Shown: in pieces, positions 5,985 through 16,027 of the stretch | How the letters are laid out: every line of letters starts with the position of its first letter | Numbering within the stretch: position 1 is the first letter of the stretch | Source: Podarcis filfolensis | Taxonomy: Eukaryota | NCBI GenBank assembly: GCA_964270895.1 | Contig: OZ185436.1 | Direction: 5' to 3' (one strand) | Length of the DNA stretch: 64,000 bases | The notes under the pieces: model-generated | What the model saw: only the letters and a program-made list of their open reading frames with translations | What the model was told of the DNA's origin: nothing | Database searches by the model: none | Made by a program: the position numbers and the translations under genes

Positions 5985-6021
5985 CGGACTCCTCGTCCTT
6001 CTTATCGAACTTCTTCAGCAT
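5985..6021 (-). CDS. COPG1: COPG1 coding exon 1 (37 nt, start codon at 6021)
   Basis: ATG CTG AAG AAG TTC GAT AAG AAG GAC GAG GAG TCC G followed by GTGAG. Confidence 0.97.
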
Positions 6022-6611
6022 CCTGTCCTTGTGTTGCTGCAGGGGCCGCGGAGAAGTTTGAGAGCCCAGGCCGGCAGGCGACGCAGCCCGGCCAAGGGGA
6101 GAGGCAAGAAGCGCGGACCCCGAGCAGGGCTATCAGGCTACTAAGGTGGCCTGCGCCTCCCTGGGCATCCCTGGAGCTCCGACTTCCTGCAAAGGCGCCA
6201 CTTCCTGCCAGCATGTCACCGGGACAGCTCAGCACCACAGCAGCGCGCAGGCGCCCTCGTCGCCTCGCGGGCTGCCTAGGGCTCGACGTGGCTGCCAGCA
6301 GTAGGGCGGAGATGGAGGGGCGCGGGGGCGGGGAGATGACCGCGAGGCGTCCTTGATTCTCAAGCCAATGGCTGCGCCGGATTGGGAACCGAGAGAACGT
6401 GATCCTGACCAATCGCTTTCAAGGAACGCGGATATTTGAGAGGGAGGGAAGCGGAAGCGCCGCGGCGGAGGGGAGAGCTACGCGTGGGCAGCGCGGGAGC
6501 AAATCTCGAGCAGGACTGAGGGAATCGGGTTTATTCCGGACCCTTGCGGGCAAGAGAAGGGAGGCTCCGCCTCTTATTTTCCCGCCTCAGCCGCCGAGAG
6601 ACGCCGCCCAC

Positions 6612-7037
6612 ATGGCCACCTCGATGAACTTTAAAACCTATGTGGATCAAGCTTGCCGAGCTGCGGAAGAATTCGCAAATATTTACTATGAAACCATGGA
6701 TAAAAGGAGGCGGGCGCTGACCAAACTCTACCAGGAGAAAGCGACCCTCGTTTGGAATGGGAATGCAGTCTCTGGGCAAGCAGCCCTGGCGGAGTTCTTC
6801 GAAAAGCTGCCTTCAAGCGATTTTCAAATTACCACCTTTGATTGCCAGCCTGTTCACGAGCAAGCCACAGAGAACCACAACACGATCCTGATCGTGACAT
6901 ACGGGTTCGTCAAGTTTGATGGCAACGAGCAGCAGTACTTCAACCAGAGCTTCTTGCTAACAGCGCAGACCACAAACAACAGCACAGTGTGGAAGATCGC
7001 AAGCGACTGCTTCCGCTTCCTGGACTCTCCGAATTAG
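6612..7037 (+). CDS. NTF2-related export protein (NXT2-like), single-exon intact ORF of 141 aa, probable retrogene
   Basis: [36 protein letters not shown]...WNGNAVSG...[10 protein letters not shown]...[11 protein letters not shown] is clearly NXT1/NXT2 family; no introns; ATG in CACATGG context; TAG at 7035-7037. Symbol left blank because orthology (NXT2 retrocopy vs NXT1) is unresolved. Confidence 0.93.
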
Positions 7038-7169
7038 TGGGCAACCGCAGTTGGGTATATTTTCCTCTGGACAAGCTAATTGGCTTTCAGGATGGCCATA
7101 CTCTGGCTGTGGGAAAGTCCCTCCTCTTTGGAAGAACTGCATCTTGCCAGGAACTGTCAACTTCACAAA

Positions 7170-7175
7170 AATAAA
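7170..7175 (+). terminator. Candidate poly(A) signal for the NXT-like gene
   Basis: AATAAA about 130 nt after the stop codon; use not verifiable from sequence. Confidence 0.4.
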
Positions 7176-10100
7176 ACTTGAAAAGAAGGGCTGTTCCTTT
7201 CAGAACATTTGCATTGATGCTGTTTGGAGAGCCACCAGTGCTTAATTCTAATTGTTCCAATACGGCTGTTATCCTATGGTATCGTTTCAGTTGGTTTTCA
7301 TGAATAAGAGTAAAAGTCCTCTGCTGCTTATTCTTATTTGTGTTTTCTCTTGGTTTTTTTTCCTGACAAGGTTTCAGTGCCTTGATTAGCTGCCTAACAA
7401 GCAGAAGTCAGTCAAGGAAGTGTTTCCCCATTGTCCCATTCTGGGAGAAAGTTAGACCTCTCAAATTTATTTGTTACGTTGTTTTTTAAATTTCTATGCT
7501 GCCCTTCATCTGACGATCATAGGGCAGTTTACAATATAAAAACACAAAAATACATAACATAGTAACAAACAAAAATACCACCCCCCAAAGAATTTGTGTT
7601 ATTAAACTGTTAATAGGGGCAAGGAAAGGGACATATCATGCTTGGCTTAGTCATGCCTGTATGGGCCTATTTCTTCCAACATACTGTACTTTGTAAATAG
7701 AACAAACCTTAACAAAGACCCCATAAGCATTCTCTCAATGCCTAAGTACCCAGGGTTCTCTCATCCAAGATAACAATCCTGTAATTTTGTAATGTTGGCC
7801 TTCCATCACTTGGAAAAAGCAGGGATCACTTAACCGCGTAACAAAATGTTAGGAGTTAAGGTGTATTAGGTGGTGGAAATGTGAAGCATATCAAGGACAT
7901 ATACTAAACCAGCAGAGCTTGTTTCAACCTGGAACTGAATCGGCAGTAGAGACAAGCTTGCCAAGATACTAGTCTTAGATGAGCTACTGAGTAGTCCCAT
8001 GCTTTTGCATAATCATAGTGGAATATTCTATTCTGTTCCTTGAACTGAGCTTAAAAAAGAAACCCTTGAGTCAGAGGAATTTAAGCTTCTCCCTGCTCAC
8101 CAGACAAAAGAATGGCAATGGGACCAAATGAAAATTGTAATCCTAAATGTTCTTACTAAATATACTTACTCAGTGCAGCTTACTCCTAACAACATATGCT
8201 TAGAAGTTTGCTGTGAAAATGCTAACCTAACCAGCATGAGGACCAGAATCTTGACTATTGTGTAAAAACCGCTCCCCAAATACATTTCACCACCAGTCTC
8301 TTCAATTGTACCGTTGAGACCTAGTTGTAGATTCCATTCGTTTAAGAATGATAGTTATTATACGCTTATCAACACTTCCTGTTGTCTGCTGTGGAATGCT
8401 ACTTTGTCCTTTTCAAGGAGAAAGCAAGCAAGAAGCTCATTCAAAATACCCCCTCATACCAATCTCTTACATTCTGCAAATATTCAAAAAGAGAGATGTA
8501 CCTACTGTCGATCCAGTGGTCCTCAAAGAACATGTTGACGGTGGTCAGCTTCAGCTAGAGTACGCAGGGACGTCTTGTGGCGGCTTGTGCTGTACCTACA
8601 CTACACAAGTGGCCTGTGTACTTTGCACCAAGCTGCCAGCCGCTGTTATCTCAAAATGTTCACTAAAGAAGCTAGAGTCAGGGTCCAGCAACGAAAGGTG
8701 ACGCTTCAGATTTGCTCCCTGCTAGCTTTGCAGCAGGTGCCATCACTGCACTGCTAAAAACTTCGCTGTCAGGTTATATTTGTTTTCAATGTCTTACTGA
8801 TTTTATCTGTTTTTATTAAGGTTTTATTTCTGTTTTACATTGGTGTATGTAATTTAGTCAAATTTTATATTTAGATAGGACTTGTACACTGCTTGGATTT
8901 TTTTTTTTTTTGGTTGAGATAGCAGTTCATAAAATTTCTAATGGATACATTTAAAAAAACAGTCTTTCTGGAGAATAATACCCCAAGTAGTGATCTGGAC
9001 ATGTAAAACATAAACTTATTCCATCTTAGCTACACAATGTATCACCCATTATCATTTTCTACTTCAGTTTTCAAATAATAGTTAAGCTAGAAGGAAAATG
9101 CATATTGAATTGTCACAATATTTTTCAGTCTTATATGAGTTGTATATACAATCCAAACCAGGATGGCATCTTAACCAGAAACCTGGGAATTGGGGCTGAT
9201 TCCAAAGTCAGTCTTTATATCCAAGAAACTCTGGAAGCCTGTTTAATATGCAGTGAGTAATTTCAGCTTCTTTTACATCAGGGGTAAGGAGATCTGTTGG
9301 ACTCCCAATTCCCCATCAGCCCCCAACCAACATGGTCAGAGATCTAGAATGACCGAGGAGTCATAATCCAAGAATATCTGGAGGGCTATACAGTAGATCC
9401 CCCCAATGCCTACTTTCTTTAGCTACTCTACTGCAAGCATAAATTTTGTTGGAAAGTACAAAACCAAGCACAACAGGCAACCTCCGTGTGGGTGTGCATG
9501 CGTGTGGGTGTACATGCAGTCTCAAAGCCCAAGGTAATACACATTTCAATCAAAATGTTTGTTTTTTAAAAAAATAAGCAACAACACCACTTATACCTTA
9601 TTTAACTGAACTCTAGCTGCCCAGATGATACAGTGAAAACTAGGACACTTCACCTTTGGATGCAGTTGCATGTTTTTTTGAAAGCCCAAGGTCCATAGTG
9701 TTGTTACATCAAGGGTGGGTGGGAGGCATGACCTTACAGCTTTTTCTGATGCTCTTTTTAGCTATTGTTATAGAAAGTTAACTATGGTGTGAGTAAGATG
9801 TCTACCTCTACATACATATGCTTCTCATTTAATGAGGTTTATTTATAATATTGCGGCAGGGGAGGAAGGCAGGAAAAACTACTTTGCAGGGGACAGTGCC
9901 TCACTGCATTGCTGTAGTGCTGATGAGATGAAAGAAATGATGAGTCTAAAGGAGTTCTGTCCTCAGGTTAAGAAGCCCTATGTAAGGGCTGCCTCAAAAC
10001 ATTATTTTCCATGCCAAGCCTCACAGAGCAAGGTTCAGCTGATGCCCTCACCACTTCATGCTCTGGTCTTCCTCGTGGGTATCCCATAGGCGTTTGGTTG

Positions 10101-11659: not shown

Positions 11660-11707
<48 letters not shown>
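11657..11707. repeat. (TTTC)n microsatellite
   Basis: Direct tandem run. Confidence 0.95.
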
Positions 11708-13213
11708 TGCAGACACACTGGACAGAGGACAAAATGCAAGGAATATGTTGAGTTCCTCCATACAGTTCATCCAGTGGTCTAGCTAGGTACAGTCAAGATG
11801 GAATGGCTGTTTTTTGACAGCTTGAATGACTAAGCAGTGAGATTCATATACCGGGTCTATGAAAGGTCATGTTGGAATACCCTTGTTAGTCTTTTAAGGT
11901 GCCATGGGACTCTTTGTTGTTTCTATAAAAGACTAAACTTGGCTACTCTTCTGGAATTTGCAAGGTACTGATAGTATAGATGAAGAGCTATAGTGCAGTA
12001 GTAGAGCACATGATTTCTTTGCAGGGTTGAAGCCCTGCCATCTTTTGTTAAAATGGCCAGGTTCCTATGATCATGCTTTTTCCATGATGGAGACAATGAA
12101 CACTAGATAGCAGATAGCTGGTTCTTTCTCATGTAATTTTACATTGACAGTGACTTTCCCTTTGTTCAAAGGAACACAGAGCTGGTTAAGGCACAGGTAG
12201 ACAACACAGTGCCCTCCATAAGTTGCAGATTACAATTCCCATCAGTCCCGGTTAGCATGGCCAACAGTCAAGGTTGATGGAGTTGTAGTTCACGGCATCT
12301 GAGGTGAGGCATCAGGTTGGCTAACAATAAACCTATGGTAGTCCATTCGAAGCCATCCTGTCCAAAGTCAGCAACATCAAACTACCAACCCCAGGCAGAT
12401 AAACTACTGTAATATAGTCAACTGTGTCCTATGGACAGGAGGGTTCCAAATGAACACTTCTAGCTGATGCCACCAGAAACTGTCCCACAGATCCCAGTAC
12501 TAAACTATTACCTGAGTCACCTGTTGCACTTAACTTGCTGTGCTTGTTATGATCTGCTTCTCTGATTTTCAGAGGCCATCTTTACATTTGATTGCATTTG
12601 CACACCAGAAATACAAAAGGCAAGCAGCATCTCTTCAAGGACTGGGAAAGGGCTGGGATTATCGTCAGAGTCCCTCTGGATTAAAGAGTCTCTCTGGAGC
12701 TAGCAAGTAGCATTACAGTTTGGTGGCATAACACCTGACGTTCTGCAAACTCAAGAGAGCTTAACAGGAAAAAGGTAGCCTTAACTATGAAGTACCGCTC
12801 TAAGAAACCAGTGGGTTTGGCTACCACCTTAAAACTTTCACAGGTTCTGGTGAAATCCAACAGGAATTGAGACAACAACCCACCAGTTAAGTGTGCTTAA
12901 GCCAATTGATTTCGAATGGTGTGCATATGTGGTCAGGTACTGTGTACTTGAGCCAGGGGACTTAGGCATGCGCAATGGTCTCTGGGTGGTGCCCAAAAGG
13001 TGGAAGCAAATTCCACTAAAAAGTAAAGGTACTTCTACAAACACATTTAAGATTGAGGTGTTTTAATAGCCACCCTTCAAAGGCAACAACCCACAACTTG
13101 TTTACTCCACACCAGATCCAGTGGGTTATAAATTGCTGCTTTCCTATATACACAATGACTAAATAATTACTGTAATAGCACCAGATAGCATCCACAAGGA
13201 CATCAGTGGGAAA

Positions 13214-14679: not shown

Positions 14680-16027
14680 CTGAGAAAGAGGAAAAGCTAA
14701 TTAGAAGATTCTTCCTCCTGGTCATGTCCTTAAGAAACACTCCATAAGAATCATTTTACCCTATTAGTCCATCCCAAGTGACAAACTCTCCGACCAGATT
14801 TGCAGATGTGGCAAATCATAGGTGTACTCATCAAGCCTCATTTGACAAGCTGGGGCAGGTGGGATGGGTGGGGGTCAAGTTTCACAGAAGAATTGCAGAA
14901 ACAAACCATTTGGAGCATCGCTAGAACTGTAGCTTTGGCAATGCATCATGGGACTTCTGAATTCAGATACTCATAGCACTTCTTATTGCAACAGAAAGGG
15001 CATACAGGGGACCAAGAGGAAAAGCTCATAAAGGATGCAAACCTGAATTGAGAGAATCAGTTTGGTGTGGCTATATATAATACATTCCATGTGTCATCAG
15101 TCGGCCAGCATCAAATAAGTTAAGAGAGCTCTAATTAAAATATGTCTTTTCTTTTTCTTTTTATATTATATATAAAAGAGGTTATGCATATGTTTTTCAT
15201 TTGATAAAAATTTCACCTTAATTTAAAAAATAAACCAAGAGCAACCAAAATACTTTTAAAAAAAGAATAGCACCGTTTCTCTGCTCCAGCTGAAGCAGCC
15301 CACACACGCACACATACACATAGAAAATACACACACACAAACATGCGCAACTGTGCTGCAGGCAGTAGAAATGGCTGCAAGATGAGTCTCAGACCAAATG
15401 TACTCTGTAACTCTAAGACCTTTTGCAGGATAAGAATAGTTTGGGAGCCTCAGGAGCCAGAACTCTTCTTTTGGTCAGTTCTCCCAGAATCCAAAACCCA
15501 CTTCAGAGTTTATACACGTCTGTTCTGATCCAATGTGTTGCCACCTACCAAAACGGGGGGGGGGGGCAGGAGAGAAAGAGAGAACCCAATCAATTTTTGA
15601 AAACAATATTTATAACTGATCCTGCTTTGAACATGTTGGTTTAGGACAGACTTCCCAAACCTGGGTGGAATCTACACACATATAAAAACCGTTCTGAAAA
15701 TGCTTTTTTAAAAAGCGTTTTAAAAAAGACCTTGAATTTTCCATAAGGCTCGCCATCGCCATCTAGTGTCACATTGTATATTGCACTTAAAACACACTTA
15801 AAATGTTTTATTTGCAGCTGTATAGCTGAGTCGCTGGTGTCCCCCAGATGCTGTCAGGCTACAACTCCCATCACCCTTGACTGCTAGCCATGCTGGATGA
15901 GGCTGATGGGAGTTGTAGTACAATAGCGTCTAGAGGCACAGTGTTGAGGAAAGATGATCTAGGAATTGCTAAAAGATGGAGAAGCAGCTCCCAGGCCCCT
16001 CTTTGAACCAATCTTACCTGCAGCAGC

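Follow-up and report, generated by a model that had tools for sequence, protein, structure and literature searches.

Introduction

Functional retrogenes are familiar, as is the borrowing of bidirectional promoters, and male meiotic X silencing is the usual explanation of retrogenes that have moved out of the X chromosome. Mammalian NXT1 (p15) was treated as a retrogene, hsa_retrop25503, by Carelli et al. 2016 (PMC4772013). According to the same study, recruitment of a bidirectional promoter is a known and sufficient route by which retrocopies become expressed, with 11 human and 12 mouse retrocopies placed head-to-head within 2 kb of a neighbour, HTR7P1/HEBP1 being an example (PMC4772013). Human NXT2, in turn, is X-linked, testis-enriched and tied to male infertility (PMC12234887).

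Here we describe a lizard gene that resembles these systems in several respects. Like mammalian NXT1, it has an intron-free CDS, is autosomal and encodes an NTF2-fold protein of ~140 aa; the partner gene, NXT2, is X-linked in humans and probably Z-linked in the lizards. The two differ in that the origin of the lizard gene is independent, in the locus, which in the lizard is COPG1/COL7A1, and in the promoter route: NXT1 gained a new 5' exon (PMC4772013), whereas the lizard gene apparently shares the CpG island of its neighbour. The likeness extends to therian out-of-X retrogenes, where the parent lies on a differentiated sex chromosome derived from the chicken 4p linkage group (as is presumably the case in the lizard) and the daughter is autosomal and constrained. 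However, the lizard system is ZW, so that the explanation by male meiotic X silencing cannot simply be carried over. Finally, retrocopies of the HTR7P1/HEBP1 type have the same head-to-head layout, which in the lizard is combined with a TATA-less CpG island containing CCAAT and GC boxes. In contrast to those cases, the lizard retrogene is protein-coding, strongly constrained and conserved in at least three genera, its co-expression with COPG1 being presumed.

We put the probability at about 0.85 that this is a functional and constrained NXT2 retrogene of the lacertid lineage, located beside COPG1, whose parent has been kept and is most likely Z-linked. The gene itself is already in RefSeq, by automatic annotation only and under an uninformative name; what is new here is its history. 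A literature search found no account of its retrogene nature, its age, the selection on it, the sex linkage of its parent or the parallel with NXT1.

The gene, its product and its orthologues

The window, that is, the whole 64,000-nt stretch of the Podarcis filfolensis genome that was analysed (contig OZ185436.1), contains on its plus strand an uninterrupted, single-exon ORF of 141 codons followed by a stop, with MATS as the first residues of the product (Table 1). A single NTF2-fold domain fills the ~140 aa of the protein: Pfam NTF2 (PF02136) spans residues 18-136 with E = 8.5e-28, and the matches to NXF_NTF2 and Mtr2 are weaker. In a search against solved structures, chains of human NXT1/p15 (1jkg and others) were matched with E = 5e-63, far ahead of NTF2 proper (only E = 1e-8 to 1e-9). 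All 70 of the 70 columns that are invariant over 19 vertebrate NXT sequences are kept, and the top database matches, among the matches listed, are all NXT2. ORF, Pfam and structure matches thus uphold the initial annotation, which had read from the letters an intact, intronless 141-aa NXT ORF starting with MATS; its estimate of roughly three-quarters identity to human NXT2 fits the 72-75% identity to primate NXT2.

Orthologues were found in Lacerta agilis (XP_032996911.1) and Podarcis raffonei (XP_053233929.1), each 99% identical to the protein of the window, and in Zootoca vivipara (XP_034962323.1; 98%), all three bearing the RefSeq name 'NTF2-related export protein 2-like'. They are orthologous to the gene of the window and like it in both locus and single coding exon, which in all three species is one 426-nt coding block. 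All of a 138-aa UniRef entry is identical to the protein as well. A chance ORF is excluded, since the ORF recurs at this locus in four other independent assemblies or annotations of lacertids.

Extra proteins named 'NXT2-like' also occur among the listed matches from the mammals Ochotona, Nycticebus, Physeter, Jaculus, Ctenodactylus, Antechinus and Petaurus. The NXT2-like gene of Antechinus shares one 86.6-Mb contig with NXT2. NXT2 seems to be prone to repeated duplication.

Table 1. Positions in the window of the retrogene, its flanks and the neighbouring COPG1 exon
Feature	Coordinates	Strand	Details
COPG1 (coatomer gamma) first coding exon	5985..6021	-	ATG 6021-6019; donor just below 5985
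CpG island, presumed shared bidirectional promoter	6022..6551	.	between the two start codons
Candidate target-site duplication, 5' copy	6552..6568	+	abuts start of 5'UTR homology at 6569
Parental 5'UTR-derived segment (exon 1)	6569..6611	+	43 nt; blastn
NXT2-like retrogene CDS	6612..7037	+	ATG 6612, stop 7035-7037; 141 aa
Parental 3'UTR-derived segment	7038..7179	+	142 nt; AATAAA 7170-7175
Candidate target-site duplication, 3' copy	7181..7197	+	A-rich start may include 3-4 nt of poly(A) remnant

Parental NXT2 and the marks of retroposition

An intron-containing parental NXT2 had been supposed at the outset, and it is present in lacertids, with four coding exons. We took it from P. muralis, P. 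lilfordi, P. raffonei and Zootoca, handling its exons singly by coordinates and summing counts over exons. The lacertid gene is ~4.8-5.3 kb long and adjoins a KCNE-type channel gene, as does human NXT2 at Xq. Its CDS is divided by three introns into exons of 15 (18 in Podarcis), 87, 145 and 179 nt, and the intron positions are the same in three lacertid loci (two of Podarcis and one of Zootoca) and in Anolis. Compared with the parent by blastn, the window yields four collinear blocks that meet without gaps at 6626|6627, 6713|6714 and 6858|6859, so that all three CDS introns are precisely absent from the retrogene at the former junctions.

Homology to the parent is limited to the mature mRNA including its UTRs and spans positions 6569-7179. 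At the 5' end, blastn aligned 6569-6619 with the P. lilfordi parent and 6584-6622 with the Zootoca parent. The alignment shows no parent homology upstream of 6569, and the CCAAT box of the parental promoter has not been copied. At the 3' end, the segment past the stop codon is 82-83% identical to the corresponding part of parental exon 4, and local alignment against three parents ends at 7179. A MAFFT alignment had hinted at homology beyond this position; this was rejected, as local alignment gave it no support in the two Podarcis parents and no more than a weak, gappy extension in the Zootoca parent.

The homologous segment is flanked by a candidate 17-nt direct repeat, the copies of which match at 14 of 17 positions, a score reached by 246 of 5000 shuffles (~5%). 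In Zootoca, the repeat is a 16-mer with 2 mismatches, and of 5000 shuffles of the 42-nt flanks at matched composition, only 5 reached its score. Upstream, the copy stops 0-1 nt short of the 5' limit of homology. The downstream copy begins 1 nt past the 3' limit in the window, P. raffonei and Zootoca, and in Lacerta the best downstream match begins 5 nt past it. We regard the repeat as a candidate target-site duplication, now decayed; its position and the closer match in Zootoca are what chiefly make it convincing. The initial annotation had seen no such duplication; on this point it needs revision, given that a candidate lies at both limits of homology. Of a poly(A) tail, only a G followed by 3-4 A's precedes the core of the repeat, and these may be letters of the target-site duplication itself.

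The AATAAA of the retrogene stands oddly close to the end of homology, just 4 nt from it. Over positions 7170-7179 of the window, the three lacertid parents have AATCAA or AATCAG at this place (15484-15493 in one of the loci). Two accounts are conceivable: loss of a proximal poly(A) signal in the parent after copying, or gain of the signal in the copy through one substitution.

Intron loss, homology limited to the mRNA, the flanking repeat and location on a different chromosome from the parent together show that the gene arose by retroposition, not by DNA duplication. A segmental DNA duplicate of NXT2 that later lost three introns would have to have lost them exactly at the junctions, and would not be expected to stop at both limits of the mRNA, to lack the parental promoter with its CCAAT box, to be flanked by a direct repeat and to lie on another chromosome; we consider the probability of such an origin practically negligible. 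The first proposal of an RNA-mediated copy of NXT2 is supported by the seamless removal of introns and by homology to nothing but mRNA.

Genomic neighbourhood and putative promoter

In Zootoca, P. raffonei and L. agilis, the gene order is COPG1 (minus strand), retrogene (plus strand) and a collagen gene encoding 3004 aa (minus strand), and the window agrees with this order. The first coding exon of COPG1 in the window translates as MLKKFDKKDEES-G and is followed by a GT splice donor. The minus strand of the orthologous loci encodes an 874-aa Adaptin_N/COP-gamma product, which ends just upstream of the retrogene. The start codons of COPG1 and the retrogene are thus arranged head-to-head and diverge from each other at a distance of 591 bp.

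Most of the intervening sequence is a CpG island with GC content of 0.66 and CpG observed/expected ratio of 0.85. The ratio is 0.80 over positions 6612-6980 of the retrogene CDS and falls to 0.19 at 7200-8200. The island contains CCAAT boxes at 6365 and 6409, an inverted one (ATTGG) at 6381, and GC boxes at 6304 and 6326; no TATA box was found in it. This architecture suggests that the retrogene may have borrowed the bidirectional promoter of COPG1. The CDS of the retro copies contains 18-22 CpG dinucleotides, compared with 4-5 in the lacertid parent and 21 in Anolis NXT2. Such CpG retention fits a long residence in an island unmethylated in the germline and would thereby point to promoter activity.

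Possible hints of expression come from public sequencing runs, among which those containing the stretch include none on record as RNA. Fourteen small runs (54-138 million letters; four studies, two related organisms) contain the stretch and cover as large a share of it as do the big runs of the same organism. Coverage of this kind, hard to obtain from unenriched shallow DNA, hints at transcripts or capture data.

Annotations of COPG1 differ among species. The range annotated for L. agilis (906-aa product) and for Zootoca runs ~1.9 kb past the retrogene to a short upstream exon starting with ATGTTC, the equivalent of which on the minus strand of the window would lie at ~8300-8540 (11700-11916 in the L. 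agilis locus and 11700-11930 in the Zootoca locus). In this predicted long isoform, the retrogene would be antisense within the first intron of COPG1. In P. raffonei, the COPG1 range ends short of the retrogene. On the other side, ~14500-64000 of the window (minus strand) is occupied by a large collagen gene of COL7A1 type, ~3000 aa, whose counterpart follows the retrogene in P. raffonei and L. agilis too.

Phylogenetic position and age

To place the gene, 37 vertebrate NXT2-type proteins were put into a maximum-likelihood tree; mammalian NXT1 is absent from it, as it is from the 120 database matches listed. The four retro copies group together with support of 100/100, they form one clade with the four lacertid NXT2 (100/99), and this clade lies within squamates (100/98). 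Lacertid NXT2 proper is 87-89% identical to the retrogene protein, and the NXT2 of other squamates (the teiid Salvator, geckos, a skink, a cordylid, iguanians and snakes) is 72-81% identical among the matches listed. Nested inside lacertid NXT2 in a tree without NXT1, the retrogene would not be an orthologue of mammalian NXT1. The independence from NXT1 claimed in the initial annotation is borne out by this nesting, whereas the designation as a squamate retrogene turned out to be too broad, the gene being sister to lacertid NXT2 only.

The taxonomic limits of the event rest on the 141-aa tree and a rough clock. They would date retroposition, along the lacertid lineage, to between the split from teiids and the divergence of Podarcis, Lacerta and Zootoca, the latter bound following from the insertion being shared by all three genera. 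In the tree, the retrogene falls inside the NXT2 of crown Lacertini to the exclusion of Zootoca NXT2 (96/93, branch 0.008). We rejected this nesting as a dating signal because one residue supports it and the shared synteny in three genera contradicts it.

Under the codon model, the neutral branch lengths are 0.20 for the stem and about 0.10 for the crown of the parent, and 0.40 and 0.19, respectively, for the retro copies (Zootoca, Lacerta). The ratio of stem to crown is ~2:1 in both paralogues, and the event should therefore be ~3 times as old as the split of Podarcis, Lacerta and Zootoca. In the literature, the crown of Lacertini is dated to 37.6 Ma (15-47 Ma in other estimates) and that of Lacertidae to 86.6 Ma (PMC6733905). 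By this rough clock, and with rates that clearly differ between lineages, retroposition may have occurred on the order of 100 My ago, on the lacertid stem or near the crown of the family.

An age of ~3 times that of the Lacertini crown, together with an intact ORF and the lack of a clear poly(A) tail, would also suit an old retrogene common to all squamates that has been lost or gone unannotated outside lacertids. We find this highly improbable, given that the retrogene and lacertid NXT2 have lacertid-specific residues in common, with the gap in identity described above, that the tree puts the retrogene in the lacertid clade, and that a second NXT gene is lacking from the listed matches of every non-lacertid squamate. 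An origin within the lacertid lineage is thus preferred.

Selection and sequence evolution

Pairwise comparison of the four orthologues by the Nei-Gojobori method (NG86) gave dN/dS of 0.02-0.08 at dS of 0.07-0.30, dS being 0.07 between the window and the P. raffonei retrogene. In addition, a GY94-type branch model, written as a custom script, was applied to 140 codons of 9 sequences; codon 83, which is split by an intron, was dropped, and the parental NXT2 of L. agilis was left out of the codon analyses. The estimates of omega were 0.097 for the NXT2 background, 0.345 for the retro stem and 0.064 for the retro crown. For the crown, omega = 1 was rejected (2dlnL 55.5, p = 9e-14), which agrees with the view, put forward from the sequence of the window, that the gene has been kept under selection. 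Omega of the stem exceeds that of the crown (p = 0.009) and does not differ significantly from 1 (p = 0.11). Polarised against Anolis, the fixed nonsynonymous site differences include 13 on the retro stem and 1 on the parental stem, and the changes within the retro crown are 30 synonymous and 7 nonsynonymous. Replacements on the retro stem include C97Y, S99F, M65K and K106E. Judging from these codon comparisons, the retrogene went through an early burst of replacements, owing to either relaxed or adaptive evolution, and then came under constraint as tight as that on the parent. Parental NXT2 is likewise intact and constrained, so that both genes have been retained.

Could the gene be a functionless processed pseudogene, its ORF having stayed intact by chance? 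Its expression is presumed, which leaves some room for this reading, but the excess of synonymous over nonsynonymous changes in the crown and the selection test contradict it; in addition, the ORF is intact in five of five sequences and CpG content has been kept as in an unmethylated promoter island. The pseudogene explanation is hardly credible, and we proceed with a functional retrogene.

At silent sites, all retro copies evolve 2-3 times faster than the parent. The neutral branch of the Podarcis retro lineage is 0.46, compared with 0.19 in Lacerta/Zootoca, and GC3 over positions 6612-6980 is 0.65 versus 0.55. The fast silent evolution of the Podarcis retrogene suggests either biased gene conversion or a CpG-island effect peculiar to Podarcis. 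Lacertid NXT2 has lost the majority of its CpG (4-5, compared with 21 in Anolis NXT2), and GC3 is 0.46 in the former and 0.74 in the latter. At nine silent sites, the state of Anolis is kept by the retrogene and changed in the parent; for part of the ancestral sequence, the retrogene is thus the more faithful record of the two.

Proposed history

We propose a scenario where a mature NXT2 mRNA would have been reverse-transcribed in the lacertid lineage and inserted in what is now the largest autosome. The insert would have been nearly full-length, comprising 43 nt of the 5'UTR, the CDS and 142 nt of the 3'UTR, and the target would have been the edge of the CpG island, ~530 bp ahead of the ATG of COPG1, with the insert in opposite orientation to COPG1. 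Transcription was probably gained from the housekeeping promoter already present there, which would have been bidirectional. About a dozen amino-acid replacements would have taken place early on, to be followed by purifying selection as strong as that on NXT2. Going by family membership, the product should be a working NTF2-fold cofactor that pairs with mRNA export receptors of the NXF1 type. The intron-containing parent would have been retained beside the KCNE-type gene, most likely on the Z chromosome.

Probable sex linkage of the parent

In Zootoca, P. raffonei and L. agilis, the retrogene lies on chromosomes of 120.8-127.3 Mb, the Z being ~45-51 Mb; the chromosome belongs to the largest size class and is therefore an autosome. 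Parental NXT2 is found on chromosomes of 47.4-51.5 Mb. In P. raffonei, this is CM049769.1 (51.49 Mb), the 19th chromosome record counting from CM049751.1, in a species with 18 autosomes. The Z of P. lilfordi is 50.7 Mb long (PMC10214862), and Podarcis Z chromosomes measure 50.7-51.4 Mb, that of P. raffonei being nearly equal in length (PMC10214862, PMC12860763). By homology, the lacertid Z corresponds to two parts of the chicken genome, 4p (the ancestral therian X) and chromosome 17; it is ~85 My old, and teiids and amphisbaenians are without it (PMC6534595). Moreover, nxt2 is listed among the genes of chicken 4p, and in Furcifer chameleons it is Z-specific (PMC10901801). Taken together, the indirect evidence of record order, chromosome length and the literature makes it very probable that lacertid parental NXT2 resides on the Z. 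No W copy of NXT2 occurs among the listed matches of L. agilis or P. raffonei, a weak hint that the parent may lie in the Z-specific part.

The lizard retrogene looks like an independent replay of the path from NXT2 to NXT1, on a homologous sex chromosome and with opposite heterogamety. Whether sex linkage was the reason for its retention is a separate matter. We give about even odds to a functional retrogene whose retention had nothing to do with the sex linkage of the parent and followed from sub- or neofunctionalisation after a lucky landing at a promoter. NXT2 readily spawns copies, many mammals carrying extra 'NXT2-like' genes; recruitment of a bidirectional promoter is known to be enough for expression (PMC4772013); and a chromosome-wide trend cannot rest on one gene. 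On the other hand, in two lineages in which the same linkage group has turned into a sex chromosome, the same gene has exported a retained autosomal retrogene. The ZW pairs of Paroedura and Furcifer derive from this linkage group as well. The chicken-4p linkage group became the therian X and the lacertid Z independently, and it is possible, if doubtful, that sex linkage drove the retention of the lizard copy. If this were true, the causes might be the dosage of a hemizygous gene in ZW females that lack global compensation, or female meiotic silencing of the ZW pair. The case would then be one of replicated gene-for-gene traffic off sex chromosomes and the first of its kind in a ZW vertebrate. 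Lacertids would serve as a system for movement out of the Z, which retrogene-poor birds cannot offer.

Implications

The favoured history, in which a lacertid NXT2 retrogene beside COPG1 is functional, would be a second, independent retroduplication of NXT2, a member of the gene pair that includes mammalian NXT1. As the Z of this lineage is homologous to the mammalian X, it would provide a natural replicate for the question of why essential housekeeping genes leave sex chromosomes, and would allow one to ask whether XY and ZW systems differ in the cause of gene departure. For the lizards themselves, it means that lacertids have two constrained genes for the NXF1 cofactor, the partner role being assigned by family membership. 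Any division of labour between the two, one ubiquitous and the other tissue- or sex-biased, could be compared with that between mammalian NXT1 and NXT2.
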